Both the position numbers and the translations under genes were made by a program. 64,000 bases of DNA from the IMG/VR virus record IMGVR_UViG_3300011934_000017, positions 156,238-220,237 of that record. One strand, given 5' to 3'. Below are positions 892 through 58,972 of this stretch, one piece after another (position 1 is the first letter of the stretch; each line of letters opens with the position of its first letter). Below the pieces are notes generated by a model. It was not told the DNA's origin and did not search any database. It worked only from the letters and a program-made list of their open reading frames with translations.

Positions 892-1929
892 CTATTCGAT
901 ATTTATGGCTGAAATAAGCTCTTGCTTATCTTCCTCGTCGGAAGGGTGTTCAGACATAAAATCTTTGAGTGTTTTTCGGAGTTTCTTATCGTTAAAGCAG
1001 ACACCTAACATAGGACATTCCTTATAGTAGGCAATCTCTTTCTCATAAAACGCCAACGTCTTGCAAGGTTTATGCTTTATTGCCTTATCTGGATTTTGTT
1101 GTTTGAAGCTTTCTACTCCAGCCTTAAACTTCAATCTTTCGTTCTTTATGAGCGCCGCGCATTCTTCGTCCCACTTGTCTGTCCAGGTTTCTGAGTATTC
1201 GAAGAAATTAAACGGGTTGTCGCGGCTAAAATAAATCAGACTAAATCCTGCAATATCCATGTTGTACTTCTTCTTCAGAACCCAACAGTATGTAGGAAGC
1301 TGCTTTAAGTGACCTCTCTGAGGAAGCTTACCGCTGTCCATTTTATTCTTGGTGGTAGTCTTATAATCCGCTACCCAGTATCTTCCATCTTGCATCTTTA
1401 TGATACAGTCAATATGACCCTTTAAACCGCGGTAATTGATTTCTTTCTCAACGTACTCCATACCGCTTTTGCATATAGGGCACTTATTATTTGTACTATT
1501 CTTCCGTGTGAGCTTTCCTTTACGCACTATTTGACCGTGTTTGTCGTAAAGATCGAGTCCTCTGGCACCTTTTTTGCATTTATGATTAATGCACTTCCAG
1601 TCACCAAAAATCTTTCCAGAAAAACCCATGTGAAATTGAATGTTCTCGTGGGCTTTTGTGCCTATAGAGGTGAAGTAGTCCCCTGAGGCGGAACACTCGC
1701 TCTCGAAATAACCTATAGAGGCTCCTTTTGTAAGCTTCATGAAAACTAATATGCTACACAAAGGAAAAGCAGAGGGTCTATACTCAGGTCTTCTTCCTTC
1801 TTTTGTAGAGTATACGTTTTCCATAGCGTTCTCGTAGAGCTTGCCCGCTATAGATGTGGCTTTTGATCGTCTCGGAGGAAAACCACCTTTGGTAAACGTT
1901 TTCTTCTTAGGGATACGTGAATTAAACAC
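892..1929 (-). CDS. Cas4/RecB-like PD-(D/E)XK exonuclease with Cys cluster and inserted zinc ribbon
   Basis: RPSAFPLC, GTKAHE, GHID...DYKT, QLPTY, C-terminal PC...CPMLGVC; extra CxxxxC...CPIC; GAGG RBS before GTG. Confidence 0.8.
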   Translation of the reverse strand: MFNSRIPKKKTFTKGGFPPRRSKATSIAGKLYENAMENVYSTKEGRRPEYRPSAFPLCSILVFMKLTKGASIGYFESECSASGDYFTSIGTKAHENIQFHMGFSGKIFGDWKCINHKCKKGARGLDLYDKHGQIVRKGKLTRKNSTNNKCPICKSGMEYVEKEINYRGLKGHIDCIIKMQDGRYWVADYKTTTKNKMDSGKLPQRGHLKQLPTYCWVLKKKYNMDIAGFSLIYFSRDNPFNFFEYSETWTDKWDEECAALIKNERLKFKAGVESFKQQNPDKAIKHKPCKTLAFYEKEIAYYKECPMLGVCFNDKKLRKTLKDFMSEHPSDEEDKQELISAINIE

Positions 1930-3069: not shown

Positions 3070-3672
3070 TTATTCGTCTTCCATTACATCCATAGCTTCG
3101 ACACACCATGCTTTCAGCTCGGCACTGGATGTGTTATCCATGAGGTACTGGACGTCTTTTGCGTTCATTGTATCAAGCTTAGTCTCAAGCTCTACAATCA
3201 AGTCCTCAACGCCTTCTTCTGAAGCGCGTAGCAGAATGTTTTGTACAAACTGGCTAACGTCATCTTTGGCTTTCGGAGGCTCTGCGTTAACGCTTTCTTC
3301 GACAGGTGCTTGGAAGCTCAGGTCGTTGTCTTCTTGCAGAACGTCGAAGATGCGGTCGTATTCTTTCTGGGCACGAGGATCTTGTAGAAATTCCTCTGCG
3401 CTTTCGCTGCTAACGATATGTACGAAACCGCGAGCAACCAAACGACGGAAGTTAGGGTTGCGAAGAACGTCTTCTTTGGTAGCAAAGGTAGATAGATCGA
3501 CCGGAATGAAAGTAACCGGTACCTGTACAGAAATTTTCTGTTGACCAGAATCTACCACAACAAAGTTTACGTTGCCGCGCGGATTGCTTTTGTTCAGCAC
3601 GTAAATTTGTGAAGAGTCAGACTTTTCAGCCTGTGCTACGTTTTGACGATCCATTTTTACTTTAATAGGCAT
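3070..3672 (-). CDS. Hypothetical protein
   Basis: Long ORF; ATG 3672 preceded by GAGGAG, preferred over TTG 3690. Confidence 0.8.
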   Translation of the reverse strand: MPIKVKMDRQNVAQAEKSDSSQIYVLNKSNPRGNVNFVVVDSGQQKISVQVPVTFIPVDLSTFATKEDVLRNPNFRRLVARGFVHIVSSESAEEFLQDPRAQKEYDRIFDVLQEDNDLSFQAPVEESVNAEPPKAKDDVSQFVQNILLRASEEGVEDLIVELETKLDTMNAKDVQYLMDNTSSAELKAWCVEAMDVMEDE

Positions 3673-3682
3673 TATTGTCTCC

Positions 3683-4237
3683 TCAGACAACGTTATTGAA
3701 AAGGGTGTTTCCAGAGTCCAGAATCTTCAAAGCTTTTTGTGCAGCTAGAAAATCCTTATTGCTAAGTTGAAGGGCGTCTTTGAGTTTGAATTTGGCTCCT
3801 ACTATTGAGGTTGTAAGGCTTTCATCAAATATCAGAGTAAGCATCCAAGTTTCGAAATGAAGCTTTTTCAGAGTCAAAGGTTCAGAGGTTATCAGGTCGT
3901 CGATTATATTGGATTTGCCTTCTACATAATTGAAACCATCTGTCTCTGTTTTTGTTTCAGTCAGAACAGAAATAATCCGCTGTAACATAATCAAATGTTT
4001 AACCTGCTCAACAGCCCTTTTTCTCAGTTTAGTAACGTCTTTTACCGAAAGCTCCTTGTGCGGAAACTTGTAGTGTAAGAGTTCATGGTCCGAAAAAGGC
4101 TTGTCTTCAGAACTAAACGTTATGTCTAGCCCTAAACAGTTATTCCGTGTTCGTGTTGAGTGGAACTTGCACGTAGTAACGCAACACTTGGTCTTAAACT
4201 TGTAACCTGAATGCAAAGGGCACGTCTTTATTTCCAT
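3683..4237 (-). CDS. Hypothetical protein with N-terminal Cys/His cluster
   Basis: GGAGG RBS, upstream TGTAAATA (4270-4263); CPLH...CCVTTCKFH...C. Confidence 0.8.
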   Translation of the reverse strand: MEIKTCPLHSGYKFKTKCCVTTCKFHSTRTRNNCLGLDITFSSEDKPFSDHELLHYKFPHKELSVKDVTKLRKRAVEQVKHLIMLQRIISVLTETKTETDGFNYVEGKSNIIDDLITSEPLTLKKLHFETWMLTLIFDESLTTSIVGAKFKLKDALQLSNKDFLAAQKALKILDSGNTLFNNVV

Positions 4238-4265
4238 GAAACCTCCAGTCCGCGTAGTAGTGTAT

Positions 4266-4850
4266 TTACAACTTTGGACTAGATTCGAAGTGGTTTAGGA
4301 AAGAGTTTAGTCTGTTAGGTCCTTCCAAACATTCAAATGGTTCTAAGTCAAAATGCTTGCAAGCATGATAGATTCCCATAAGCGAACAGTCCAGTTCGTG
4401 CACCGTTTTTCTTTCAGCTTTTGGCAGAGGTTTTACCAGCTCTTTGAGTTCATCGTAAAGCTCATTCAGAGGTTTAACGTCTTCCTCTTTGAACCTTCGG
4501 TTGAAGCTGTTCTTCCAGGTCGATGCGGTGTACAGATGGAGTTGCGGGTACAAAGTCACAAGAATACCGAGCATCATGTTGATGGACTCTATGGTAATTC
4601 CTTTGAGACCTCTTGATTGAAAGCGTTCAGCAACAACCAAATCAAAAGGACCGAACTCGCTTTCCAGACTAAGAATTTCTGCCATGAAGCTGCGATACTC
4701 GTTACGAATCGTAGCAGGGTTTTTAATCGTGTCGTAAACAAGCTTGGTTCCCATAACGCGAATTTTTAAGCGGGAGCTTGATGCGAGTTTAATAACGGAT
4801 GCGGCGTAGTTTGTGGTGCCGGGGTCCATTGAGAGTACAGTTATTGTCAT
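4266..4850 (-). CDS. ruvC: RuvC-like Holliday junction resolvase
   Basis: LSMDPGTTNYA, VVAERFQ, E-SINM and HELD acidic motifs; ATG 4850 with GGAGG RBS. Confidence 0.8.
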   Translation of the reverse strand: MTITVLSMDPGTTNYAASVIKLASSSRLKIRVMGTKLVYDTIKNPATIRNEYRSFMAEILSLESEFGPFDLVVAERFQSRGLKGITIESINMMLGILVTLYPQLHLYTASTWKNSFNRRFKEEDVKPLNELYDELKELVKPLPKAERKTVHELDCSLMGIYHACKHFDLEPFECLEGPNRLNSFLNHFESSPKL

Positions 4851-4935
4851 GGGGACCCTCCATAGGTATATAGCGCAAATTACTAAACGAAGGTCTGATA
4901 ATTTCAATTACATGCTAGAGTCTCAGGAGAATGAC

Positions 4936-6090
4936 ATGGCTAGAATACGCAGAGGTACGGGAGGCAAGCTCCGTAAAAATGCAAAGAACTTTACGCACAA
5001 ACAAGCGCAAGCACGTTTGCAAGAAACGGTAGCACCCTTTAACAAACAGGTAGATAACTCGCTACGAGTAAATGCTGTAGAGATTGATTATTACCAGACA
5101 CAAAACAAAATAGGCAGACCATGTACTTGCGACAAGATACAAATATATGATGAACAAAAGACGCGAGACGGTGGCAGCAATTCAAATCATATAGAACCAG
5201 TTGTACCTACCGTAGACGAAGACAGTAGCTCAAGATTAGATATTGAGCTTCAGGACGACAATCTGTTTGGTGATGGGCCTGCTGAAAAGCTGTACGGTGA
5301 AAACGTATATGATGTTAGTGGTTCCGACAATCTGAAAGACGACGATATTCCTGACGAAATATATCGAAACATGTTGGCAGGCGAAGGCGACGTAGCCATG
5401 TCTGAAACCTCCATGTTCGGTTCAAATGCTAACTGTGGAATATGCTATCGTGTAGGTTTCCAGCCGGGGTACAAGTCATACGGCAAACAGCGTACATTGT
5501 TGACCACGTGGGACATTAAAGACATAAGCAGTTATAATGTTGTCACGACCGAGACACCTAATAAGATGCGGCGTCAAGGCCCCAAAACAGACTACACGTT
5601 TGTTGAGTTCACCTTGTTCGTTCCGAAGTATTTCAAGTCTTGTATTTTCAGCATTCGAAACAACACACAGATTCTACAAGGTGAGCGGATTCGAGCGTTT
5701 AACCAACCGCTGACTTTGAAAACGTTGAAAGACAATGCAGGCAAAGAAATTGTGGTTCGAGTGGATGCGTTGGAGTTCACGCATATTGTTGTCGAGTTTG
5801 ATCTAGGTGTTCAAAAGACATATGCCAATCTAGGACCAGAAAGCCAAGCGCTTGACTATTCCAAGATGGATGCGCTTTCAAACTTTCCTTTAGTTCTTCC
5901 TCCTTCTATTCACGAGGTCAATACAGGTGATGTTATAGTCATCAAAGACCGAAAACTGGTACTAAAAATCATAGACCTGGAGAGAAAGATAACAGCAGAT
6001 AAGAGGCAATTAGAATGGACAGTTCAAACTCGACTAATCCAAAAAACAGAACCCTTGAGAGACATTGCGAAGGGCATGAAGATTCTGTAG
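4936..6090 (+). CDS. Putative virion structural protein with CxC...CxxC motif (possibly head closure/neck type)
   Basis: AGGAGA RBS before ATG 4936; PCTC and CGICYRVGFQPGY. The function is inference. Confidence 0.55.
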   Translation: MARIRRGTGGKLRKNAKNFTHKQAQARLQETVAPFNKQVDNSLRVNAVEIDYYQTQNKIGRPCTCDKIQIYDEQKTRDGGSNSNHIEPVVPTVDEDSSSRLDIELQDDNLFGDGPAEKLYGENVYDVSGSDNLKDDDIPDEIYRNMLAGEGDVAMSETSMFGSNANCGICYRVGFQPGYKSYGKQRTLLTTWDIKDISSYNVVTTETPNKMRRQGPKTDYTFVEFTLFVPKYFKSCIFSIRNNTQILQGERIRAFNQPLTLKTLKDNAGKEIVVRVDALEFTHIVVEFDLGVQKTYANLGPESQALDYSKMDALSNFPLVLPPSIHEVNTGDVIVIKDRKLVLKIIDLERKITADKRQLEWTVQTRLIQKTEPLRDIAKGMKIL

Positions 6091-7505
6091 GAAGAAAGAA
6101 TTACATTGTCACCGTAAAAAGAAATGTCGTCAAAGAAGACGTGCTGGATGAATTACAGCGCCCAGAATGCGGATGCGTCCATCGAAGCGTCGAAGTAACC
6201 GACTTCCAATCGTTGAGCAGAAGGAATTTCACAGTAGCTTTGACTGTGGAAGAGCGGGATATCCTGAGAGAAAGCGACAATGTGGTTGATGTTGTTTTGG
6301 AAGAAGGCTTCAATAGAATGAAGCCTGTGCTTGAAGAGCAACTGATTAATCCTGCTTTTGAGAATAGCGCTTCAAGCACCCACGACAACTGGGCTCTGGA
6401 TCATTGTGCGTTTCGAAACGGATACAAGTACATTTACTCGCACACCGGAAAGAACGTAGACATAATCTTCATTGACTCAGGTGTGGACCCTAATCACTCT
6501 GAGTTCGAACAGAACGGTGTATCCAGAGTCCGCGTTATTGAATGGGAAGCTGGACAGTTCAGCACTAAGCCAGATCAATACGTAGACACGGAGGGTCATG
6601 GGACTGGTGTGTCTAGCTGTGGTGTAGGCAAAAGACAAGGCTTCGCAAAAGACAGTGACATATATAGCATAAAGATTTTTGATAATGATGCCTACAGCCC
6701 GTTAAAAGCGTTGCAGCTTGCGCGTACTTGGCACAATCAAAAGACGAACGGTCGTCCTACCATAGTGAACAATAGCTGGGGATATTCAGCGGAGTATCCA
6801 CCTGGGCATCCTAAAGCAGGACAAAAGCATCCTGTTCAAGTAGCTGTGATAGATGCTGAAATCGAATCCATGATAGACGCGGGCATTATAGTAGTAAGCG
6901 CAGCAGGAAATGAAAATCACCACGTAGCCGCAGAAGGCACTGCCGAATACGATGATTTTTACTACACAGACAGCAGCGGTAACTACACCGAAATTATGGA
7001 GGATGCTGCATACTTTGATAGGAACAATCGATACACGCCGGGCGGTTCTGCCGAGACGATATGCGTTGGTTCAATAGGTGAGTTCTATCCTACTTCCAGA
7101 TTCATAAGGTCATGGTTTTCTAATTTTGGAAGTAGGGTAGACATATTTGCTCCAGGACGTGTGATTCAGTGTGCTCAGTCCTTAACAACAAACGATCTAA
7201 AGAAAACCAATGGTACTTCTTTTTCTTCCGGCATTCTGAGCGGTATAATTGCGCTTTGGTTAGAGATAAACCCGACTGCGAATCAAATGGATGTTAGAAA
7301 ATGGCTGAGTAGGCATGCCTTTTCAAGCGAGGTCGTAGGCAGTTTAGAAGGTGCAGAAAATCAAACAGCCAGAGTATTGTTCAACGGTGTCAGAGCAGCT
7401 AAAGACACTCCTCATACAATACTGTTGAAGCAAGGTAATCAATGGTATCCAGTACAACATATAACCAGCAATAAACGAGCCGTATATGGCAGGAGAATTT
7501 CATGA
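6015..7505 (+). CDS. Subtilisin-family (S8) serine protease with I9-like prodomain
   Basis: Triad motifs FIDSGV, EGHGTGV, NGTSFS; oxyanion AAGNE; NNSWG, FSNFGSRVDIFAPG. Start uncertain (76-nt overlap with the upstream gene). Confidence 0.9.
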   Translation: MDSSNSTNPKNRTLERHCEGHEDSVGRKNYIVTVKRNVVKEDVLDELQRPECGCVHRSVEVTDFQSLSRRNFTVALTVEERDILRESDNVVDVVLEEGFNRMKPVLEEQLINPAFENSASSTHDNWALDHCAFRNGYKYIYSHTGKNVDIIFIDSGVDPNHSEFEQNGVSRVRVIEWEAGQFSTKPDQYVDTEGHGTGVSSCGVGKRQGFAKDSDIYSIKIFDNDAYSPLKALQLARTWHNQKTNGRPTIVNNSWGYSAEYPPGHPKAGQKHPVQVAVIDAEIESMIDAGIIVVSAAGNENHHVAAEGTAEYDDFYYTDSSGNYTEIMEDAAYFDRNNRYTPGGSAETICVGSIGEFYPTSRFIRSWFSNFGSRVDIFAPGRVIQCAQSLTTNDLKKTNGTSFSSGILSGIIALWLEINPTANQMDVRKWLSRHAFSSEVVGSLEGAENQTARVLFNGVRAAKDTPHTILLKQGNQWYPVQHITSNKRAVYGRRIS

Positions 7506-8119
7506 ACGACAAGAGCCTAGAAATTTCAAAGAACATGGTAGTATTAGCACGTCGTCGCAAAGGTAAAGGAAAGAAGCGTGGTTCAGCGCGTAGCCAGATG
7601 CTAAAGATGGTCATGCCTATGCTTTCCCGTGAACATGGAGAGAAACTAGCAGAAGCTATCGAACACAATAACGTAAGTCTGCTACGCCGCACATGGGATT
7701 CAATTAAACATGATCTATCGGAAAAGCTGGCGAATGAAGCTACTGCCAGCGACTTTGCTTCTGAAGTCCAAGAAATCTTTGATAAAGTCTTTAAAGACCT
7801 TGAAGAAGAGTTTCTTTCACAATCAGCGTCTAAGAACAGAGGACGTTTGTTAACAGGCACCGCGCGTATTCCCTCTTTGACTCGTGATCTAATTGCAGAT
7901 GGTTATGTTGAATTTACCGATGCAAAAAATAACGTCTATACTGTGACTATCACGCAGCTTGGTGTTAAGAAAGTTGGAAATCCTCAACCAATAATCTATG
8001 CAGGCGCTTTAATTACCTCTGATTCCGGAATGAAAGAAGGTATATCTGCTTCTGGAATTTATGCTGACGTTTGTTCGGAGATTATTATTTCTGCTATGTC
8101 GCTGTCAGAAAACGATTAA
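7502..8119 (+). CDS. Hypothetical protein
   Basis: ATGA overlap with the protease stop; followed by a terminator. Confidence 0.8.
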   Translation: MNDKSLEISKNMVVLARRRKGKGKKRGSARSQMLKMVMPMLSREHGEKLAEAIEHNNVSLLRRTWDSIKHDLSEKLANEATASDFASEVQEIFDKVFKDLEEEFLSQSASKNRGRLLTGTARIPSLTRDLIADGYVEFTDAKNNVYTVTITQLGVKKVGNPQPIIYAGALITSDSGMKEGISASGIYADVCSEIIISAMSLSEND

Positions 8120-8135
8120 ACCTACCGAAACCTCT

Positions 8136-8163
8136 AAAAAGGGCGGCAAATGCTGCCTTTTTT
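8136..8163 (+). terminator. Rho-independent terminator
   Basis: AAGGGCGGCA-AA-TGCTGCCTTT stem followed by T run. Confidence 0.8.
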
Positions 8164-9130
8164 CGTGTCTGAAGCGTGACGCTGAAACATCAAATGTAAC
8201 AGAGTGTTAACCATGCAAAAGCACTCTACAGGGCTGTTTGAAAGCATTGGGGGCGTCATCCATGCAAAACCAATGCTTTTGCATGTCTGTAAGCAAAATA
8301 CCTTGTTACAATTCGTTACAAAAAAGTTTTGTGTGGAAGAAATGCGTTTTTAGACCGTTTGGAGCCTCTGTCCTGTTAAAAAACGTCAAAATATCAACCT
8401 TGTTTTTTAGACGCCTTAAAATCAGGCTAAAAATCACTCATTTTTAACGATTTCCTCAAAACCAAAAAGTGTCAATACGCAGTATTGGCGCAGATTGCGT
8501 TGAGCAGCAAAGCGTGAAGAGCTAAGCGAGGCGCAGCCGAGCATTAGCGATGATGCTTGAGTAATGCCTCAGCAAACAAGAGACGCTAGGCGGCGCGAAC
8601 ACTTAGAGCCCGTCTCGTCCAGAAGCGTTGAGCGCAGCGAATAAGCGAAGGGGTTCCAAGCGAAGCGTTAAGCGTTCCAAGCGCTGCGAGGCAGCGCGAT
8701 AGCAACGAGCGTAGCGAGTTGCTTAAAAGAACCTATCCTACGCGATCCTACGACTGATTCATTTAAAGAACGTTAAGCAATTAAAAATTGCATTCTTTTG
8801 GATCATGTTAAAACAGGCCGAACTCTGTCTTTGCTAAGACCATAGCAGACCTTAAAACAAGGTGAATTAATAGGACGTGTGGAATTAAATGAGCCAGTCG
8901 TAGGACTGCGTAGTGTTGTATAATGTTAAAGGTCCAACTCGCTACGCTCGTCGTCCCTAACGCTGCTTCGCAGCGTTTCTCTAATCCTTTCCGCTTCGCG
9001 GTACCGCGGGCTAACGCCCGCTCTCGCTCACTTCGTTCGCTCACCTTAAAAAACCTAATTTGTCAGTTCAAAAATCAAAGTCTTTTCAAGACAAACTTTT
9101 TAAATGAAAAACTTTTGTTGCGCGCTTTAA
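8164..9130. other. Non-coding dyad-symmetric region; candidate replication origin
   Basis: Largest gene-free gap; 17-bp perfect IR 8705-8721/8935-8951, nested 15/17 IR 8738-8754/8897-8913, AT-rich core, strand-specific hairpins, flanking A/T tracts. Confidence 0.55.
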
Positions 9131-9131
9131 G

Positions 9132-9139
9132 TGTAAATA
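9132..9139 (+). promoter_or_regulatory. TGTAAATA promoter motif upstream of the modification operon
   Basis: Exact motif copy ending 34 nt before ATG 9173. Confidence 0.65.
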
Positions 9140-9172
9140 TTGAACAGATTATATGGAAAACCGGAGATTACG

Positions 9173-10648
9173 ATGGGAAAACAGTTACCCGAAGAGCTAA
9201 GGTATCAGCTTCTTGTTTTCGACTATAAGAAAGCTAACAAGGCACGCAAGCTCTGGAAAAAACGTAAAGGAGATAAGGATAAAGAAGCCCATAAAAAGTT
9301 TTGCTATGGATTAGGAGCAAAGCTAGACGTTTCTCCGAAAGTAGTTAGCTTCATCGTCAAAAACAATAAATGGGCAGATCAAAAGCCCGCAGAGCATGTA
9401 AAATCATTACCAACAGGCCTTCAAGAATACGATAAACCTTCTTTGAAGCCTGAAGCCTTAGTCAGAGGAAGAGAATTATACATATCTCCTAAAAACTGGC
9501 GCAGGCTCAACGAGCATTACACCAAAGGAAAAATAAAGAAAGCTATTGTTCGCGCTGTTAGAAAGCTAGATTTACCTGCACCTGTTCAACCTATAAGCCA
9601 AGAGCAAGCAGATGATAGCTTTCGAGCACTGAAAAAGTTGCGTTCTGACAGCATGATAAAACGTATGCCTACCTGCACACGGTGGGATTATAAATACGGT
9701 ATTTCCGACGTTGTTATTGACGCACCTCGAACAGGAAACGAATGCTCAAACTTTTATCATCAGGAGTCACGTTGGTGGTGCGACTATCAGAGTATTCCGT
9801 CACCGATGAAAGTATGGAATTCTGATCTTCACATGTATTCCATGATGAATGCTTTATGGACGTTGAAGTTTAAGAAGATTACAGGACCAGAGCTTCGCAC
9901 AGCTATAAGTGTCCGTAAATATGTGGCTAGTCAGTTTAAACCTTCTGCCGCCAAAGCGTTTTACGAGCTATTTGACTGCAAGCACGTTTACGATCCTTCC
10001 AGTGGCTGGGGAGACCGTCTAGCAGGCTTCATGGCAGCTAAATGCACCAAGTCCTATTGCTCTACGGATCCCAACAGCAGACTGTACGACGACTATGAAT
10101 TGCAGAAAAATCGGTACGGTGGAAAGAAAGAAATAAACATGTACTGTCACGGTAGTGAAATCAAAGGTGGTGTTCGCAAGATGTACGGACACAGAGTTGA
10201 TACTGTCTTTACTTCGCCTCCTTATTTCAATGCCGAACGCTACAGCGAAGACGAAGGCCAAAGCTTTAGGCAGTTTGATGAAATAAGTGCGTGGCGTGAA
10301 AATTTCCTGTTTCCTTCTTTGAAAAATGCGTGGAATGCTTTGACTTCAGAAGGTGAACGCGGTGGCATTCTAGCAATCAATATTTCGGACATATACAACT
10401 CTTCGGATAAAACTCGCGGTGAGATATGCGACCCTATGAACGATTACATATCTTCGCTGAAAGGTGCTCGATACATCGGTTGTATTGGTTTGCGTCTAGC
10501 TAAACGTCCTGAGAGCGGTGCACTTGAAGGTAAACAAGGTGCAAGTATCGAACCTATCTGGGTCTGGGCTAAAGGTGGCTCTTGGGAGCTAGACGATTAT
10601 ATAGATAACGGATTTAAGACTAAGAAAGTAAAAGGTCTTTGGGGATAA
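9173..10648 (+). CDS. SAM-dependent amino (N4-C/N6-A type) DNA methyltransferase
   Basis: Motif I YDPSSGWGDR and motif IV FTSPPYF; long basic N-terminal extension; GGAG RBS before ATG 9173. Confidence 0.85.
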   Translation: MGKQLPEELRYQLLVFDYKKANKARKLWKKRKGDKDKEAHKKFCYGLGAKLDVSPKVVSFIVKNNKWADQKPAEHVKSLPTGLQEYDKPSLKPEALVRGRELYISPKNWRRLNEHYTKGKIKKAIVRAVRKLDLPAPVQPISQEQADDSFRALKKLRSDSMIKRMPTCTRWDYKYGISDVVIDAPRTGNECSNFYHQESRWWCDYQSIPSPMKVWNSDLHMYSMMNALWTLKFKKITGPELRTAISVRKYVASQFKPSAAKAFYELFDCKHVYDPSSGWGDRLAGFMAAKCTKSYCSTDPNSRLYDDYELQKNRYGGKKEINMYCHGSEIKGGVRKMYGHRVDTVFTSPPYFNAERYSEDEGQSFRQFDEISAWRENFLFPSLKNAWNALTSEGERGGILAINISDIYNSSDKTRGEICDPMNDYISSLKGARYIGCIGLRLAKRPESGALEGKQGASIEPIWVWAKGGSWELDDYIDNGFKTKKVKGLWG

Positions 10649-10649
10649 T

Positions 10650-11360
10650 ATGGCACATATCATTGAAGCAAACAGTATCGACAGTCTTTGGTATCGTACT
10701 ATGAATACCTTACTGACTGAAGGCGATAAGATTAGCGGTATTCAAGAAATTCCTAATCTGATCTTGGTTCTTAAAAAGAATTTTCGATCCTCTGAGTTTT
10801 TCGATAAAGAGTTTCGTCGTATTTTTGGAGACGAACGAATAGACTTTGCATCTTCTGTAACGTTTGTTCCTCCGAAAGAAGGCATGGTAAGTCCTTCATA
10901 CGAACAGAATGAGCCCAAAGCTAAGTGGACGAAAACTTACTGGGGTCGTATGATCAGTTTTGACGGAAGTGTTAATCAGATTGAGGAAGCAATCAAAAAG
11001 CTTTCTAAAGGTAAGAATACCAAGATGATTTCTATAGGTATTTATGCGCCTTCTTCCGATCATCGCAAAGTCATGGGTGGTGTGCCTTGTATGACTGCTA
11101 TCGATATAAAGCCTAGAAATGGAAAGATTGATCTATCTGTTTTCATGAGGTCTATGCGATTCTCTAAGTCGGGTTATGGAGACGTTCATGCCTTGTGTGA
11201 ACTAGGTAAATATATCTGTGAGCGCTCTAACATGGAAATGAACAGCCTCACCATGTTTGCGACCTCTGGACACACTTTTTACTCTGGTGAAGAGTTTACA
11301 AACTGTAAAGCTCTTATGGAATCAATGAAAGAACGCAAAGCAGAGAAGGTAAGAATATGA
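10650..11360 (+). CDS. Atypical thymidylate-synthase-fold protein (dCMP-hydroxymethylase-like Asp)
   Basis: YWGR...NQ, PC147, RS167-168, D178 at the E. coli N177 position, H208; R170 replaces the conserved D169. Confidence 0.8.
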   Translation: MAHIIEANSIDSLWYRTMNTLLTEGDKISGIQEIPNLILVLKKNFRSSEFFDKEFRRIFGDERIDFASSVTFVPPKEGMVSPSYEQNEPKAKWTKTYWGRMISFDGSVNQIEEAIKKLSKGKNTKMISIGIYAPSSDHRKVMGGVPCMTAIDIKPRNGKIDLSVFMRSMRFSKSGYGDVHALCELGKYICERSNMEMNSLTMFATSGHTFYSGEEFTNCKALMESMKERKAEKVRI

Positions 11361-12172
11361 AGCTCAGCCTTAATAATCCAGTTGAAACCCATCGTATTGG
11401 CAAATACGAAGTCTTTGTCAAGCGTGATGATATGATGGGTGATAATAAAATTCTTCCACCTTGGGGAAAGATGGACGCCATTGATAGTATTCTTCAAAGA
11501 ATGGATCTTAGCGTACCTCTTATACAACTGAATGTCTTTGGTTCTTGGAGTGGTTGGGCACTCGCACGTCTCGCTAAAAAGTATGATTGCGAAGTACATG
11601 TGGTTCATCCTAAGACGAAGAAAATCACTGACGACTATATAGGTGTGATGGAAGAAGCAGGTGCTATCATTCATCCTATTCGACATAATATGATGCGCGT
11701 TTTGTACGCTCAGACGAACAACAGGGCGAAAGAAGAAGGTATGAGAATGCTGCCGTATGCATTCAACACACCGAAATATCTAAACGCTATGGCAAGACGT
11801 TTACGCGCTACTTTAGAAGAGCTGGGTCCCATAGATAACTTGGTGGTAAGCTCTGGTAGTGGTGTGACTGTTACGGGACTGTCTAAACCTTTTCTTGATC
11901 TAAATCCTAAAGGTCAAGTCTACACTGTTTGCGTTTCGTCCGAAAATTCGATTCGTAAAACGTTTAACAGTCGTGAAGTCAGCACTGATCCTGTTCACAT
12001 TATCAAGTCACCGTATGAGTTTGGTGATACGATGCCTAAAGTTGAAGTTCCTTTCTCTTGTAATCAGTTTTGGGATAAGAAAGCTTGGCATTGGTTGACG
12101 GAGAACAAGAGCATTCTTAAAGGTAAGCGTACACTGTTCTGGAATCTAGGTGGTGAGTATACATTTTTGTGA
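11357..12172 (+). CDS. PLP-dependent fold-type II enzyme (ACC deaminase/D-cysteine desulfhydrase-like)
   Basis: VKRDD, PPWGK (putative PLP Lys), SSGSGVT phosphate loop, LFWNLGG; ATGA overlap with the upstream gene. Confidence 0.85.
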   Translation: MKLSLNNPVETHRIGKYEVFVKRDDMMGDNKILPPWGKMDAIDSILQRMDLSVPLIQLNVFGSWSGWALARLAKKYDCEVHVVHPKTKKITDDYIGVMEEAGAIIHPIRHNMMRVLYAQTNNRAKEEGMRMLPYAFNTPKYLNAMARRLRATLEELGPIDNLVVSSGSGVTVTGLSKPFLDLNPKGQVYTVCVSSENSIRKTFNSREVSTDPVHIIKSPYEFGDTMPKVEVPFSCNQFWDKKAWHWLTENKSILKGKRTLFWNLGGEYTFL

Positions 12173-12183
12173 GGATTGAATAA

Positions 12184-13026
12184 ATGGGCAAGCCGAAAGT
12201 TAAAGAATGTTTGATACGTAACCTGGAAAGATATGACGGACCTTTTGCTGTTCTTCTGTCGGGTGGTGCAGACAGTCACGCTAATCTTTTCGCATTACTT
12301 GAGATGGGCGCAGACGTACACGTATATAGCTGCACCTTAGAAGACAGGGAAAGCAGGGATTTTATTTGTGCTCGCAGGACTGCTGAAATCTTTGATCTAC
12401 CTTTCACACCTGTTATTTTACCTACAGACCTCGACCAGCTCCTTGTAGATATTCGAGAGAACATGAGTCTTATCGGAACAAAAGGCAAGGTAGAGGTAGA
12501 AGCTTTATGGGCGTTTCGTAAAGCCGTTGATATTATAACAGAACCTAGTATCGTCAGCGGTCTGTCAGCAGGTATGTATTTTTGTTTGACCAAGAAAGGC
12601 AGCATACACTACGCACATACAGGAAGAATCGACGAATATCGTAGAGAGACATTTAAAAGAGCCTCTAATCCTAATAATCAAGGGGCCAAGATGAAACGAT
12701 ATTCGAAAAGCGTTGGAAAGAAGTGGATAAATCCTTGGATAACCCGAGGAATGCTAAAGACGTTCTTAGGAACTACATGGGAAGATGTAAATAAACCACG
12801 ACAAAAAGAAGCGATCCGCGCAGACTTTGAAAAATACTTTGCAAAAACCAAAGTGTTTAATCAACGAGACATGCACAAAGGTGATAGCGGTATGTCTGAG
12901 CTATTCGCTAAATTGTTGGAAGACCCTAAGGTAAATGTTAGGAATCATAAATCTGTTGTTGGTATCTACAATATGATACGAGCAGAAGAGCTGGCCAGAG
13001 TAAATAAAGGCCCTGGCTTGTTCTAG
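12184..13026 (+). CDS. Asparagine-synthetase-like PP-loop amide ligase without glutaminase domain
   Basis: LLSGGADS PP-loop, IVSGLSAGMYF, INPW, KEAIR, KGDSG; 280 aa with no N-terminal Ntn domain. Confidence 0.75.
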   Translation: MGKPKVKECLIRNLERYDGPFAVLLSGGADSHANLFALLEMGADVHVYSCTLEDRESRDFICARRTAEIFDLPFTPVILPTDLDQLLVDIRENMSLIGTKGKVEVEALWAFRKAVDIITEPSIVSGLSAGMYFCLTKKGSIHYAHTGRIDEYRRETFKRASNPNNQGAKMKRYSKSVGKKWINPWITRGMLKTFLGTTWEDVNKPRQKEAIRADFEKYFAKTKVFNQRDMHKGDSGMSELFAKLLEDPKVNVRNHKSVVGIYNMIRAEELARVNKGPGLF

Positions 13027-13038
13027 TCGGAGAATGCA

Positions 13039-13701
13039 ATGCTTACTTTCCAACATTTAGATAAACTCACCATAAACGAATTTTTTGAAAGCGACTTGTT
13101 TTTTGAGTTGCACTCTCTGTCTGGTATGAGCATATTTAGCGGTAGTACGGAAACAGTAAAAGAGAAATTGCTAGATTCTGTACACAACCAACAAGAAAAG
13201 GTTTCACACAACCTCGTATGTTCGAATGGAAAACCTGTTGGTTTCTTTTCTTTGAAGACGCACAGTACCTACTTTTACTACGACACCTTTACAGATACAG
13301 TAGAAGACTTAGGTAATGCGGTAGAGTTTTCTAGTTGGTTTGTTTCTAGTAGCTATAAAAATCTAGTTTCTCCTACCGCCGCTATAATGAGAAAAAGCTT
13401 AGAAATGGCAAGTGACATTGGACGCATTGCTGTGTTTGGTGTGCGAGCACAGTATTACGAAGACGGTACTCCAATGTTTCTTTCTGCGAATAGAGATTGT
13501 TGGAGTCACGAACCGCGACCAGACTACAATATATCTAATGGGCCTAAAAACTTGTCTGTGACGCATCCTTCTTTTCATCCTGATTCTTTTGGTATTTTAA
13601 AAGCTGCTCACCTGTTTGGCTTTAATATGTTTGGTTTAGATGCTTACGACGGGAGTCCTAAATATCGCAAGTTTCTTTCTTCAATGAAATCTGTTGAATG
13701 A
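13039..13701 (+). CDS. Putative GNAT-fold acyltransferase
   Basis: LVCSNGKPVGFFSL strands, EFSSWFVSSSYKN motif-A-like segment, AIMRKSLEMA helix; GGAGA RBS. Confidence 0.5.
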   Translation: MLTFQHLDKLTINEFFESDLFFELHSLSGMSIFSGSTETVKEKLLDSVHNQQEKVSHNLVCSNGKPVGFFSLKTHSTYFYYDTFTDTVEDLGNAVEFSSWFVSSSYKNLVSPTAAIMRKSLEMASDIGRIAVFGVRAQYYEDGTPMFLSANRDCWSHEPRPDYNISNGPKNLSVTHPSFHPDSFGILKAAHLFGFNMFGLDAYDGSPKYRKFLSSMKSVE

Positions 13702-13745
13702 GATTCTGCAATATCCACTATGTAATGGTTTGATGAGGATAAATA

Positions 13746-14726
13746 ATGTCGATTACCGTAGAAAAAGACGATTATATAATCGTTCGTTACCGCAACAAGT
13801 CCGTTCTTTGTTTTGTGTTGAATGGAAAAAGCTGTAGAGGCGTTATAGAAAAAACGCTTCATACCGATGATCCTGAGAATATCACTTACGAAAGTGAAAA
13901 CGTTCTCTGTAATCTGGGTCCCAACCCACAAAATGGCAAAATCTACGGCATTGATGTTACACCGTATCGAAGCACCATAGATACAAAGACGTTTGGCCCC
14001 ATTCATCTATTCCGTGACGTTCCTAAAAAGGAGCTTAAAGCGCTTCGTTCTGCAATGAAGACGGTGCACAAGAAATTTGAGAAAGAGGCGAGCACTGCCT
14101 TTCTACCTTTGTATCAAATGCACATTCTACCGAAGAAGGGCAAGTATGCAGGGTCATATCTAGCCAAGTCTAAAGGCAGTGAAGTATGGGACCAGATTAA
14201 ACTGCATCCCGACACATTCGTTGATCCTATCTATAACGAATACCTGATTGCCCACGAGTTTGCACACGGCCTCTGGTACCGCTGTGTGCCTATGGATATC
14301 CGAGCTAAGTGGATCAATCTATATCAAAAGCGTCGTAAGCTAAACTCTATTAATCAAAAGCATCTGGACGAGCTTTACCAAGAGCTTATGCGTTATGAAG
14401 GTGGTATTCGTGATTACATCAAAGAAGTAGCCGACGATGAAGAAAAACTGGTAATCAAGGAAGTGTTGAACTACTTCAAGCGTTACCAGAGTATGTCTTC
14501 AGATGATGTGGAGCTCTTGTTGTTACATGATAGTGGCAAGCTTGCTGATATGTGGCCGAGCCGTGCTCTACTATCAGAGACCAGTCCCGACATTTCCACC
14601 TATTCTATGGTCAAGGTAGAAGAATTTTTTGCAGAGGCTGTGGCTTATCATTTTACAGGAAGAACGTTACCTAAAGATGTTCAGAAAGGCATTTCTATCA
14701 CCTTCAAAAAGTGCAAACAAGCTTAA
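13746..14726 (+). CDS. Zincin-like metallopeptidase domain protein
   Basis: IAHEFAHGLW (HExxH) and distal EEFFAEAVA. Confidence 0.65.
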   Translation: MSITVEKDDYIIVRYRNKSVLCFVLNGKSCRGVIEKTLHTDDPENITYESENVLCNLGPNPQNGKIYGIDVTPYRSTIDTKTFGPIHLFRDVPKKELKALRSAMKTVHKKFEKEASTAFLPLYQMHILPKKGKYAGSYLAKSKGSEVWDQIKLHPDTFVDPIYNEYLIAHEFAHGLWYRCVPMDIRAKWINLYQKRRKLNSINQKHLDELYQELMRYEGGIRDYIKEVADDEEKLVIKEVLNYFKRYQSMSSDDVELLLLHDSGKLADMWPSRALLSETSPDISTYSMVKVEEFFAEAVAYHFTGRTLPKDVQKGISITFKKCKQA

Positions 14727-14733
14727 TTCTAGC

Positions 14734-14760
14734 AGGGAAGCTTTTTAGCTTCCCTTTTTT
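14734..14760 (+). terminator. Rho-independent terminator closing the 9173-14726 operon
   Basis: AGGGAAGCT-TTTT-AGCTTCCCT-TTTTT. Confidence 0.85.
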
Positions 14761-14815
14761 AGGTTCAAATAGTGTAAATATTACTCAATATAACGCTATA
14801 CTTAAGGCAATACTC

Positions 14816-15529
14816 ATGAACCTAACTAAAATCATGGAAAACAATTCAAGGCTGTTCTCTCACGTTATAATCCCTAGACGAAGCGCTCCTACAAAAATTC
14901 GTCCCATTTTACCTCTCAAGATTAAGTTTCTAACAAAACCTAATTCTAAGCAAATCCTTTATTCTGGTTTGTACTTTTGCATTCCAGATAATCTTCTGTT
15001 TTACGAAATGGACTTACTAGAAAAGGCAATTATAAGCAGGTTGCCTGACATTTCTCAACCTTTGAACATACCGTATAGTCTGGTTACGAAACTAGATCCG
15101 TCATTTTATGGATACATAAATGGATTTCACGTCGAAGACAATAAGGCTTATATAGAATCTGCGAATTGTCTTTTTGTTAATCCTGACTCACCTTTATTAC
15201 CTACGTCGCTCGAAGACCCTGCTTATGGTGTACTGCTTCCCCTTTATGAGGCGTCTGCTTGCTTATCTTATCTGTTAGCTTCCATATCCCTATATAGAGC
15301 TGGTGACTTTGATACTCTACCTACGATGCTAGAGAAGACTTGGAGTAAAGTAGAAAAAGCTTCAGGTGTAAATATGACTAAAGCATCTTTCATCGACGGT
15401 ATGTTTAGAATCGGTCCTGACTTATTTGGTAACTCTATAGAAGATGATTGTGTGGCTCCCGGACTTGCGCATCTTCTAGGTAGCTTTTTGTCTTTAGATA
15501 CTGACGTGTCGAAACATTTGGAGTGGTAA
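14816..15529 (+). CDS. Hypothetical protein
   Basis: ATG 14816 downstream of TGTAAATA (14773-14780). Confidence 0.7.
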   Translation: MNLTKIMENNSRLFSHVIIPRRSAPTKIRPILPLKIKFLTKPNSKQILYSGLYFCIPDNLLFYEMDLLEKAIISRLPDISQPLNIPYSLVTKLDPSFYGYINGFHVEDNKAYIESANCLFVNPDSPLLPTSLEDPAYGVLLPLYEASACLSYLLASISLYRAGDFDTLPTMLEKTWSKVEKASGVNMTKASFIDGMFRIGPDLFGNSIEDDCVAPGLAHLLGSFLSLDTDVSKHLEW

Positions 15530-25256: not shown

Positions 25257-26261
25257 ATGTATATTCATCAAAGAGCTGGGTTCATCCATCAAAGAACTGG
25301 CTCAAACTTTCGAGTAACACCTTGGCCGACTTCTGGCGCAGGGCATTTTCGACTATTTAACAAACCTAAGCTAAGCACCGATCTATCTGTTATTGCGGAG
25401 TATATAGCGGAAGCCCTTTTCAATACTAACAGAGCGTTCGTTAGGCATTCCACTTTCACACTGGTCAATGTTGTGTCACCTATCGCTAATCTCAGCTATG
25501 GGTACAACAAAGAACCGTATGAATCCATACGTCGTTTTCATCCCCTGTCATTTACGTTCGCGTTTACTCGACGTGATACTTACAACGGTGTGTATCGCCC
25601 TCGTTTTATGCTGCGTCCGTATCCTCAAACTACATTCTGGGGATTCACGTTATTAGGAAATTCTGACTTTCTCACAGTCAATATTCCTAAGCGTGTTATG
25701 AGAGAAGCGGGACTACTCATTCCCAACATGCGTGAAATGGAATGGCTGTACATGGCGATAGGAGCTTTCTCTAAAGGCTTTGCACGACAGTTTGATTTCT
25801 ATACGACGAAAGGAATGTTTCGACAGAAGCCTATTTCCGTAGAAGTAGCTAAAAGTAGATTCTATCACGCTCGCTTTCAAGCCATGTTAAAGCGGGTGCC
25901 TTATAACTACTGGGGCTACAACAGGGATATGTGGCAGCTTGCTCCCAACTTCATTAGTCCTCGTGCTGCAAACGAAGACTTTCTGGACTTCTACTGCCGC
26001 TATCTGTCGGAAGAGTTTTACGAACAGTACAAGACCAACAATGTTAAACGCATTGAACGTGCAGCCCGTGATTACCTGAAGCCAGGTGTACAGCAAGCGA
26101 TTAATGCTGTTAACGCACAGTCGATTCCTGATAACCCTAGTAGAAATTTCTTGACCGTTCAACACATGCTAGACAACAATATCAGCAGTCTAGGCAGAAA
26201 AACTGGTGTGGATAACATCGTTCAAGATTTACTATCCAACAACTTTGGAGAAGATTCATGA
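25257..26261 (+). CDS. Hypothetical protein, aromatic/Arg-rich
   Basis: AGGAGG RBS; 334-aa ORF. Confidence 0.75.
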   Translation: MYIHQRAGFIHQRTGSNFRVTPWPTSGAGHFRLFNKPKLSTDLSVIAEYIAEALFNTNRAFVRHSTFTLVNVVSPIANLSYGYNKEPYESIRRFHPLSFTFAFTRRDTYNGVYRPRFMLRPYPQTTFWGFTLLGNSDFLTVNIPKRVMREAGLLIPNMREMEWLYMAIGAFSKGFARQFDFYTTKGMFRQKPISVEVAKSRFYHARFQAMLKRVPYNYWGYNRDMWQLAPNFISPRAANEDFLDFYCRYLSEEFYEQYKTNNVKRIERAARDYLKPGVQQAINAVNAQSIPDNPSRNFLTVQHMLDNNISSLGRKTGVDNIVQDLLSNNFGEDS

Positions 26262-58957: not shown

Positions 58958-58972
58958 TTGAGGAGCCCTGCT

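Follow-up and report, generated by a model that had tools for sequence, protein, structure and literature searches.

The window analysed here, a stretch of 64,000 nucleotides from the IMG/VR virus record IMGVR_UViG_3300011934_000017 (positions 156,238 to 220,237 of that record), belongs to a PaBG-like jumbo phage and contains a string of six co-directional genes closed by a terminator-like hairpin. The second gene of the string encodes a divergent thymidylate synthase (TS)-like protein, and four of the six genes make up a cassette that recurs in other viral loci. The features are listed in Table 1. No tRNAs were found in the window, and a promoter scan gave fewer hits than expected from shuffled sequence.

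Table 1. Features of the gene string that includes the TS-like gene; coordinates are those of the window.
Coordinates	Strand	Length	Feature
9140..10648	+	502 aa	DNA amino-methyltransferase-like protein, motif I YDPSSGWGD, motif IV TSPPY; alternative ATG start at 9173; conserved cassette partner
10650..11360	+	236 aa	Divergent enzyme of predicted TS fold, ATG start; Cys147, Arg167-Ser168, Arg170 (E. coli D169), Asp178 (E. coli N177)
11357..12172	+	271 aa	Fold-type-II (PALP) PLP enzyme; overlaps the TS-like stop by 4 bases; invariant Lys38 (PxWxK), KRDD motif, SxGSGVT phosphate loop
12184..13026	+	280 aa	PP-loop (SGGADS) ATP-dependent amide ligase, homologue of CmoY; no glutaminase domain
13039..13701	+	220 aa	Probably GNAT-like protein; follows the ligase
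13746..14726	+	326 aa	HExxH zinc metallopeptidase; last gene before the hairpin; syntenic in PaBG; membership in the pathway uncertain
14734..14765	+		Terminator-like hairpin, 9-bp stem and T-run (consensus scan only)

The assignment of the TS-like protein to the TS fold is supported by several searches. The Pfam model PF00303 gave E 1e-3 and 18.7 bits, below its gathering threshold of 24.3, and the PHROG thymidylate synthase families gave E 2e-9 and 1e-8. A single-sequence search of the PDB was not significant, but a profile of the family found MilA (1e-7, the best hit) and the HY126 dCMP hydroxylase (4e-7) among PDB sequences. The AF2 model has a pLDDT of 92.4 and a pTM of 0.90, and all significant Foldseek hits of the model in the PDB were TS-superfamily structures, with E down to 1.6e-12.

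The residues were mapped in a MAFFT alignment with E. coli ThyA, T4 gp42 and RB69 gp48. E. coli Y94 corresponds to Y97, Q111 to Q110, P145-C146 to P146-C147, R166-S167 to R167-S168 with the 20-residue spacing kept, D169 to R170, N177 to D178, H207 to H208 and L143 to G144. R21 falls in a gap, E58 aligns to the variable K53, and W80 and W83 are not alignable, so that on sequence alignment alone no counterparts of E58 and W80 were recognised. HMMER alignments to MilA and AfhB also place D178 on their Asp without a gap, whereas a pairwise hhalign to E. coli ThyA inserted a 3-residue gap before D178, and this single alignment is therefore ambiguous. The hhalign comparisons of the family with ThyA (probability 52%) and with T4 gp42 (probability 0.35%) were too weak to settle the N-terminal half.

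The observations of the original prediction are confirmed: the catalytic Cys and the Arg-Ser pair are retained, an Asp lies at the base-specificity position, and the folate- and phosphate-contacting residues named there are altered or not recognised. The presence of D169 and E58 equivalents in an alignment had been named beforehand as a result that would refute the claim, but the alignment placed Arg and a variable Lys, respectively, at these positions. Two of the claims need to be qualified. The replacement of the SRR pair by NTKM is correct, but K125 aligns to R126 and is conserved in 116 of 117 family sequences, while the R127 position is variable, and one phosphate contact may thus survive as Lys. 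The second concerns the Arg at the D169 position, since among the 117 distinct sequences of the family position 170 is Arg in 101, Ala in 15 and Lys in one. The family trait is therefore the lack of Asp or Asn rather than the presence of Arg, and the family fits none of the known classes, namely ThyA, the T4-type dCMP hydroxymethylases and the flavin-dependent 5-hydroxy-dCMP synthases (signature D169N). In the same set the Cys is present in 116 and Asp178 in 116, and P146-C147 and R167-S168 are conserved in at least 116. The lack of R21, E58 and W80 is shared with short archaeal-type TS relatives, but four of the five such relatives noted (P0068, P0071, P0076 and P0090) keep Asp169.

The family is almost confined to uncultured phages. 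A nucleotide search of positions 9000-15000 against 50,697 phage records found no match, and tblastn of the protein against the same records found only ordinary phage thymidylate synthases below 27% identity; no cultured representative was found. Among 1.84 billion representative proteins about 17 clusters at 50% identity score E<=1e-30. A scan of genome contigs found one true member, in an Ignavibacteria MAG contig with the same cassette, and the remaining hits were archaeal short TS proteins. Literature searches found papers on AfhB and 5hoC and on CmoAXY, but nothing on a TS-like/PLP/AsnB cassette, and the comparative paper on jumbo phages does not mention it.

The gene neighbourhood was compared in 79 IMG/VR loci. 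Within 10 kb of the TS-like gene an AsnB/CmoY-like amide ligase is found in 74 loci, a PALP enzyme in 71, an SPPY DNA amino-methyltransferase-like protein in 66 and a radical SAM enzyme in seven, all co-directional. The dominant order is methyltransferase-like, TS-like, AsnB, PALP, with adjacent or overlapping genes. No CmoA or CmoX homologue was found by tblastn in the 79 loci (E<=1e-6) or in the window (E<=1e-5). The PLP enzyme is replaced by a radical SAM enzyme in several cassettes, and three of those loci show no ligase within 10 kb; the pathway is not uniform. Fusions were also found. One protein (P0057) is a fusion of a TS-like and a radical SAM enzyme, and viral proteins of 720 aa combine PALP and N6_N4_Mtase, with ParB_N in 39%.

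The Pfam N6_N4_Mtase hit of the 502-aa protein is weak and a PDB sequence search with it returned nothing, but its Atlas structural neighbours are viral N4-cytosine DNA methyltransferases. Homologues lie next to TS-like genes in five loci (L003, L005, L007, L010 and L011), and all 57 ORFs extracted from the IMG/VR loci carry SPPY. The PLP enzyme gave Pfam PALP at 5.8e-11 (42.7 bits against a cut-off of 35), PHROG 7093 (threonine dehydratase) at 3e-25 and an AF2 pLDDT of 93. Its best Foldseek hits are serine racemase, TdcB threonine deaminase, D-cysteine desulfhydrase and an ACC-deaminase homologue, with E about 1e-12 for serine racemase, TdcB and DcyD. With K38 invariant and the phosphate loop conserved in the alignment it looks catalytically intact and resembles aminoacrylate-forming eliminases. 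The 220-aa protein has no direct family hit, but is 28% identical (E 5.5e-13) to a 212-aa protein of L003 annotated with Pfam Acetyltransf_1. The metallopeptidase matches PHROG 17197 (peptidase) at 1e-95 and is 42% identical to PaBG gp182.

The ligase gave Pfam Asn_synthase at 3e-5 and PHROG 26038 at 5e-53, and no hit in a PDB sequence search. It is 27% identical over its full length (E 2e-25) to SpCmoY of Synechococcus phage S-B43, which has been shown experimentally to ligate glycine to DNA 5-carboxymethylcytosine (PMC12783734), and 39% identical (E 1e-52) to PaBG gp180. Of 71 ligases from the loci, 50 keep the Ntn-glutaminase start MCG, all 50 with SGGxDS, and 67 carry SGGxDS. In PaBG the position of the present cassette is occupied by CmoX (35% identity to SpCmoX) and CmoA (29%), before the same ligase, Zn peptidase, clamp loader and SbcC.

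The interpretation given in the original prediction, that the enzyme activates C5 of cytosine through the Cys and couples it to a non-folate electrophile, perhaps supplied by the adjacent PLP enzyme, is partly supported. Cytosine specificity is a reasonable call, because Asp178 is almost invariant and the characterised cytosine-specific relatives T4 gp42, RB69 gp48, MilA and AfhB all carry Asp there. A changed co-substrate site is likely, as position 170 is never Asp or Asn in the family, and the proposed partnership with the PLP enzyme gains strong independent support from the neighbourhood, in which PALP is always on the same strand. The alternative of a substrate other than a free dNMP is less favoured, because R167, S168, K125 and H208, which are nucleotide phosphate and 3'-OH contacts in TS, are conserved. 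The ligase as the most constant neighbour, the TS-radical SAM fusions and the replacement of CmoA/CmoX in PaBG-like synteny had not been noticed; the last points to a carboxyl-bearing C5 group.

The explanation preferred here, although tentatively, is that the TS-like protein is the pyrimidine-C5-activating enzyme of a conserved, mobile phage cassette for cytosine hypermodification, comprising the SPPY methyltransferase-like protein, the TS-like enzyme, a PALP or a radical SAM enzyme, and the AsnB/CmoY-like ligase. In this model the enzyme would bind dCMP, with Asp178 reading N3/N4 of cytosine, Arg167, Ser168 and Lys125 holding the phosphate and His208 contacting the 3'-OH. Cys147 would add to C6 and make C5 a carbanion/enamine, as in all TS-fold enzymes. 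In place of the N5-iminium of methylene-tetrahydrofolate, C5 would attack a carboxylate-bearing electrophile held by a family-specific basic, polar pocket (R56, R63, R170, K173 and Y176). The most likely source would be an amino acid processed by the adjacent beta-eliminating PLP enzyme, giving 2-aminoacrylate/2-iminopropanoate, the corresponding 2-oxo acid or the PLP-bound aminoacrylate. Elimination of the Cys would leave a 5-substituted dCMP carrying a carboxyl group. After phosphorylation and incorporation into DNA the ligase would adenylate the carboxylate and form an amide, in most cassettes with ammonia from its own glutaminase domain and in the present phage with an external amine or ammonia. 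The GNAT-like and the methyltransferase-like proteins may decorate the base further. That the PLP enzyme merely supplies ammonia to the glutaminase-less ligase of the window was considered and rejected as its sole role, because 50 ligases with an intact MCG glutaminase were found among loci where PALP is almost always present.

What the analysis itself establishes is the fold, the conservation of the residues and of the cassette, the fusions, the homology of the ligase to a characterised enzyme and the exchange with CmoX/CmoA in the syntenic position, while dCMP as the substrate, independence from folate, the identity of the electrophile and the order of the steps are inferred in the absence of biochemical data. 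Folate use is not excluded, since the related short archaeal-type TS proteins also lack R21, E58 and W80 and some receive their pterin from a fused PterinBD domain; missing canonical contacts therefore do not prove a non-pterin donor. The AsnB-type ligase of marine cassettes passes the NCBIfam asparagine-synthase cut-off (295 against 267 bits) and could in principle act on a free amino acid. Coupling of a TS-fold carbanion to a PLP-derived electrophile has no precedent, and the role of the methyltransferase-like protein is unexplained.

TS-fold enzymes were long thought to be strictly folate-dependent, until the flavin-dependent 5-hydroxy-dCMP synthases, with structures released in 2025 and described in a 2026 paper, broke that rule. 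The present family would be a third cofactor or co-substrate class. Its fixed association with ligases of the newly described CmoY type predicts an undescribed cytosine hypermodification and a modular logic of handle plus ligase, in which the handle-installing genes can be swapped between CmoA/CmoX and methyltransferase-like/TS-like/PLP. Confirmation would add new enzymes for DNA functionalisation and new phage countermeasures against restriction. In its most far-reaching form, which is possible but unlikely, the enzyme has given up pterin chemistry and forges a C-C bond between the Cys-activated C5 of dCMP and an amino-acid-derived electrophile made by a dedicated PLP eliminase or, in sister cassettes, by a fused radical SAM enzyme. 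The amino-acid- or carboxyl-bearing cytosine would be diversified into amides by the ligases, giving a second, SAM-independent route to a carboxyl handle on phage DNA, widespread in marine T4-like and PaBG-like jumbo phages.

Of the alternatives, the one that survives best, although it is considered unlikely, is a conventional pterin-dependent dCMP methylase or hydroxymethylase of the short archaeal-type TS clade. It would use methylene-THF, bound differently or presented by a partner, to make 5-methyl- or 5-hydroxymethyl-dCMP, and the PLP enzyme, ligase and methyltransferase-like protein would then elaborate that group in DNA, for example by beta-replacement of serine onto the 5-hydroxymethyl oxygen followed by amidation. 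The closest named model is the methanogen-type thymidylate synthase TIGR03283, Tyr97 and Gln110 are conserved, and 5-hydroxymethylpyrimidines are the usual handle for phage hypermodification. However, the TIGR03283 score is far below its cut-off, Asp is never found at position 170, and the L143 position (G, S or K in the family) is not the Asp or Glu seen in T4 gp42 and RB69 gp48 and described for hydroxymethylases. No kinase or pyrophosphorylase of the known 5-hm pathways was detected in the gene tables of the 14 loci examined, and no pterin or DHFR gene among the Pfam annotations there.

A flavin- and O2-dependent dCMP 5-hydroxylase like HY126 AfhB, RB69 gp48 or DLP3 gp80 is improbable. In this case the 5-hydroxyl would be alkylated by the PLP enzyme in place of glycosylation, flavin binding and hydroxylation being inferred by analogy only. 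The two best Foldseek hits are the AfhB structures 9iqc and 9iqu (E about 2e-12), but the TM-scores of 0.65-0.72 are no better than to MilA. The diagnostic D169N substitution (PMC13326640) occurs in none of the 117 sequences, on which ground membership was rejected, L143E is absent, and no glycosyltransferase or NDP-sugar genes lie in the cassette.

Equally improbable is that the cassette modifies an exocyclic amine through the SPPY methyltransferase-like protein, using a SAM-derived or PLP-made donor, while the TS-like protein only supplies or depletes a nucleotide pool, for example as a dCMP-consuming enzyme. The PALP-N6_N4_Mtase(-ParB) fusions are common in viruses, the SPPY motif is kept in all 57 partner proteins, and CmoA/CmoX show that a donor synthase plus a DNA transferase plus a ligase is a working design. 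The TS-like gene is, however, the anchor of the cassette and is fused to the radical SAM partner, and the methyltransferase-like gene is the least constant member and often several kb away. The least likely alternative is direct carboxylation of C5 with CO2 or bicarbonate to 5-carboxy-dCMP and conversion by the Gln-dependent AsnB-type ligase to 5-carboxamido-dC, with a separate role for the PLP enzyme: TS-like and ligase are the most constant pair and usually adjacent, the basic pocket residues are invariant apart from the variation at position 170, and Cys-C6 adduct chemistry in C5-methyltransferases can break the C5-COOH bond of 5-carboxylcytosine, which makes the reverse mechanistically conceivable, but the reaction is thermodynamically uphill and unprecedented for the fold, and it leaves the near-universal PLP partner and the TS-radical SAM fusion unexplained.

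Compared with known systems, the flavin-dependent 5-hydroxy-dCMP synthases are the best structural matches, being short (about 235 aa) phage TS-fold enzymes with the catalytic Cys, Arg-Ser, Asp at the N177 position, an altered D169 position and a non-folate co-substrate. Their signature is D169N plus L143E, sequence identity is only 16-17%, and their clusters carry sugar-nucleotide and glycosyltransferase genes where the present one carries a PLP enzyme, an amide ligase and a methyltransferase-like gene. The CMP 5-hydroxymethylase MilA (PDB 5b6d, 5jnh) and the T4 gp42 dCMP hydroxymethylase share the TS fold, the Cys nucleophile and the Asp conferring cytosine specificity, but both keep Asp169 and use methylene-THF. 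Of the T4-type residues Asp177, Asp169, Glu58 and an acidic residue at the L143 position only the first is present here, and profile similarity to T4 gp42 is negligible. ThyA is matched in fold, Pro-Cys and Arg-Ser, but not in Asn177. The methanogen-type short thymidylate synthases (TIGR03283, E 2.6e-21, residues 4-210) and related short archaeal TS-like proteins have the same compact architecture without the R21 loop, the E58 helix motif or the long C-terminus, but the score (76.1 bits against 174.55) is below half of the cut-off. Other distant short TS-like proteins are fused to MtrA/PterinBD, while the phage family pairs with PLP or radical SAM enzymes and amide ligases. The CmoA/CmoX/CmoY 5-carboxymethylcytosine pathway of S-B43, with homologues in PaBG, shows the same logic and the same last enzyme, in that a C5-of-cytosine activating enzyme using Cys-C6 chemistry is combined with a donor-making enzyme and a CmoY/AsnB-type ATP-dependent amide ligase. 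It differs in using the Cx-SAM synthase CmoA and the SPPC C5-DNA-methyltransferase homologue CmoX, whereas in the present cassette activation would be by a TS-fold enzyme, expected to act on the mononucleotide before replication, and the donor enzyme would be PLP- or radical-SAM-dependent.

The gene under study lies in a tight, co-directional string of genes, closed by a terminator-like hairpin. Taken alone, the protein barely matches Pfam Thymidylat_synt (E 1e-3, below the gathering score), although it does match two PHROG families labelled thymidylate synthase. A database search gave 48 homologues with 35-88% identity, many of them on contigs of 150-280 kb. The alignment of these gave significant profile hits in the PDB to MilA (1e-7) and to the dCMP hydroxylase of phage HY126 (4e-7), and a confident AF2 model (pLDDT 92.4). 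The Foldseek hits are all members of the TS superfamily, led by the AfhB structures 9iqc and 9iqu and followed by MilA. The BFVD viral library gave only TS-like hits, at 20% identity or less.

Features of the window and of compared loci mentioned in the text
Sequence	Coordinates	Strand	Feature
Window	892-1929	-	345-aa ORF (GTG start; scanned without its stop as 344 aa), PHROG match 'CRISPR/Cas system associated' (Cas4-like PD-(D/E)xK exonuclease), E 1.4e-35; next to the primase and a Holliday-junction resolvase
Window	6015-7505		496-aa subtilisin-like S8 protease (Pfam 5.7e-27)
Window	8120-9140		About 1 kb upstream of the cassette, with only short, unconvincing ORFs
Window	9140-10648	+	502-aa SPPY methyltransferase-like (MT-like) protein
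Window	10650-11360	+	236-aa TS-like protein (target)
Window	11357-12172	+	PALP enzyme, overlapping the target by 4 bases
Window	12184-13026	+	PP-loop protein (SGGADS motif), CmoY-like ligase
Window	13039-13701	+	220-aa protein following the ligase
Window	13746-14726	+	326-aa HExxH zinc metallopeptidase
Window	14734-14755		Terminator-like hairpin
Window	26258-27493		Head-tail connector gene
Window	34130-40144		ORF of 2004 aa
Window	44926-47928		ORF of 1000 aa
Window	58958-63478		ORF of 1506 aa
PaBG (L002)	4593-7747		Region compared with the window ligase
S-B43 (L017)	3252-5874		Region compared with the window ligase
'Hodarchaeales MAG' contig (L008)	8678-10014		Radical SAM gene next to the TS-like gene, split into 80-aa and 364-aa ORFs
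Sister contig (L010)	2838-4145		Radical SAM gene, intact (435 aa)

The family was aligned with E. coli ThyA, T4 gp42 and RB69 gp48, all taken from annotated records, with short TS relatives serving as bridges. The original prediction, that this is a TS-fold protein with the Asp of dCMP specificity but without folate- and phosphate-contact residues, holds at the residue level, and the alignment reproduces its mapping: Y94=Y97, C146=C147, R166/S167=R167/S168, D169=R170, N177=D178 and H207=H208. R21 falls in a gap, E58 lies opposite a variable residue and the SRR pair corresponds to T-K125-M. Among 117 distinct family sequences Cys147, Asp178 and K125 are each present in 116, while R100, K173, G175 and Y176 are present in all 117. 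Position 170 is Arg in 101, Ala in 15 and Lys in 1, and never Asp or Asn. The changes are therefore a family trait, with two nuances. One phosphate contact probably survives as Lys125, and the absence of R21, E58 and W80 is shared with the short archaeal-type TS clade, which still keeps Asp169.

An exhaustive profile search of 1.84 billion representative proteins showed a sharp boundary of the family, with only 17 clusters scoring E<=1e-30. Below that limit come short TS-like proteins of another kind, some of them (P0077, P0084, P0133 and P0193, and also P0088, P0096 and P0102) fused to MtrA, the corrinoid-binding subunit, plus a PterinBD-DUF4346 domain, or to NUDIX, Ham1 or SAM-methyltransferase domains. 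This suggests that the compact TS core often receives its one-carbon donor from a separate domain. The family is uncharacterised and virus-restricted. The one hit in cellular genome representatives is an Ignavibacteria MAG contig with MT-like, TS-like, ligase and radical SAM genes in a row, and no cultured phage was found to have the family.

The window is the last 64 kb of the 220,237 bp IMG/VR contig 3300011934_000017, a jumbo phage related to Pseudomonas phage PaBG. The Zn peptidase, clamp loader and SbcC follow in the same order as gp182-186 of PaBG. The zinc metallopeptidase is conserved in PaBG (gp182) and in another TS-like locus (L003), and together with the subtilisin-like protease it lies among the replication genes. 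The three very long ORFs downstream of the head-tail connector gene are presumably virion or tail proteins. No tRNA and no strong sigma-70-like promoter were found in the 1 kb upstream of the cassette. PaBG has tRNA genes some kb upstream of its equivalent cluster, but none were found anywhere in the window.

Eight TS-like loci were inspected first, DNA being obtained for six of them, and this was followed by a systematic tblastn survey of 79 IMG/VR loci. Within 10 kb of the TS-like gene, and always on the same strand, an AsnB/CmoY-like ligase was found in 74 loci, a PALP enzyme in 71, an MT-like protein in 66, a radical SAM enzyme in 7 and CmoA or CmoX in 0. The commonest order is MT-like, TS-like, AsnB-like (about 500 aa) and PALP, with adjacent or overlapping genes, and it occurs on T4-like marine phage contigs as well as on jumbo phages. 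Of 71 ligases, 50 start with MCG, the catalytic Cys of the Ntn glutaminase domain, and nearly all carry SGGxDS. All 57 MT-like proteins carry SPPY. Two kinds of gene fusion tie the parts together: a metagenomic 676-aa protein (P0057) is TS-like plus radical SAM, and the protein atlas contains viral 720-aa proteins combining PALP, N6_N4_Mtase and often ParB_N. Both are candidates for showing how the cassette enzymes cooperate.

The PALP protein has an invariant Lys38 in a PxWxK motif, a KRDD motif reminiscent of the ACC-deaminase/D-cysteine-desulfhydrase family and an SxGSGVT phosphate loop. Its model (pLDDT 93) is closest to serine racemase/dehydratase, TdcB threonine deaminase, D-cysteine desulfhydrase and an ACC-deaminase homologue, enzymes that form a PLP-aminoacrylate and release a 2-imino or 2-oxo acid. 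The radical SAM partners weakly match class-B-type and ArsL/PhpK/HpnR-like models. The radical SAM gene that is split in the 'Hodarchaeales MAG' contig is intact in a 100%-identical sister contig, which indicates a frameshift or an assembly error, and the contig looks viral (helicase, primase) rather than archaeal chromosomal. The 220-aa protein after the ligase is distantly related to an L003 protein with GNAT Pfam hits.

In the TS fold the Cys thiolate adds to C6, C5 becomes nucleophilic, and Asn or Asp at position 177 selects uracil or cytosine. The analysis shows by sequence alignment that this machinery and the nucleotide phosphate and 3'-OH contacts are conserved, that the pterin-anchoring Asp is replaced, and that a set of invariant basic and polar residues (R56, R63, K173 and Y176, with R170 usually Arg) appears. 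From the gene context, the product must feed an ATP-dependent amide ligase of the CmoY/AsnB kind and must depend on a PLP eliminase or a radical SAM enzyme. What is inferred from this, catalysis included, is that the enzyme alkylates C5 of dCMP with a carboxyl-bearing, amino-acid-derived electrophile before replication, and that the ligase then amidates the handle. Candidate electrophiles are 2-aminoacrylate/2-iminopropanoate (a Mannich-type addition analogous to the folate iminium), a 2-oxo acid or glyoxylate (an aldol-type addition analogous to hydroxymethylation), the PLP-bound aminoacrylate in a complex, or CO2. That the protein is a catalytically active C5-pyrimidine-modifying enzyme initiating a DNA hypermodification cassette appears likely, whereas the non-folate, carboxyl-handle mechanism as a whole is tentative, and the more radical reading of PLP- or radical-SAM-coupled C5 alkylation is doubtful. 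The interpretation in the original prediction, that the Cys-activated C5 is coupled to a non-folate electrophile perhaps supplied by the adjacent PLP enzyme, is supported in part and much better motivated by comparative genomics, but remains unproven in the absence of an isolate and of biochemical data.

Of the alternatives, a pterin-dependent methylase or hydroxymethylase of the short TS clade, with downstream elaboration, survives best but is considered unlikely. A flavin-dependent 5-hydroxylase, or a pathway centred on the SPPY methyltransferase-like protein with the TS-like enzyme in a supporting role, are both improbable. A direct carboxylase is the least probable.

In PaBG the slot upstream of the 'asparagine synthase' gp180 holds gp177 and gp178, which are 35% and 29% identical to SpCmoX and SpCmoA of Synechococcus phage S-B43. 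In S-B43 it has been established that CmoA makes carboxy-SAM, that CmoX makes 5-carboxymethylcytosine in DNA and that CmoY, the Asn-synthetase homologue, ligates glycine to that carboxyl group with ATP. PaBG gp177, gp178 and gp180 are homologues of the recently characterised CmoX, CmoA and CmoY. PaBG itself, and Erwinia jumbo phages with the same ligase plus a CmoA-like methyltransferase, are therefore predicted to carry 5-carboxymethylcytosine-derived amides, although the records still annotate these genes as 'tRNA (cmo5U34)-methyltransferase' and 'asparagine synthase'. The PP-loop protein of the window is 39% identical to PaBG gp180 and 27% identical, over its full length, to SpCmoY. CmoX and CmoA are absent from the window, and in their place stand the SPPY methyltransferase-like protein, the TS-like protein and the PALP enzyme. 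In the inferred mechanism the TS-like enzyme would be a functional analogue of CmoA plus CmoX.

The closest named model, the methanogen-type TS TIGR03283, scores 76 bits against a cut-off of 174.55, so that the protein is not a member of it. Nor is it a ThyA, from which it differs by Asp instead of Asn177, by the lack of Asp169 and by a score below the Pfam threshold. It is not a T4-type hydroxymethylase either, from which it differs by the lack of Asp169 and of the acidic L143 residue, and hhalign to T4 gp42 gives a probability of 0.35%. The flavin/O2-dependent 5-hydroxy-dCMP synthases are reported to have N177D, L143E and a diagnostic D169N (PMC13326640), and by this published signature the protein is not one of them, as no member of the family has Asn at that position. 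The family is distinct from the three known functional classes of TS-fold pyrimidine-modifying enzymes.
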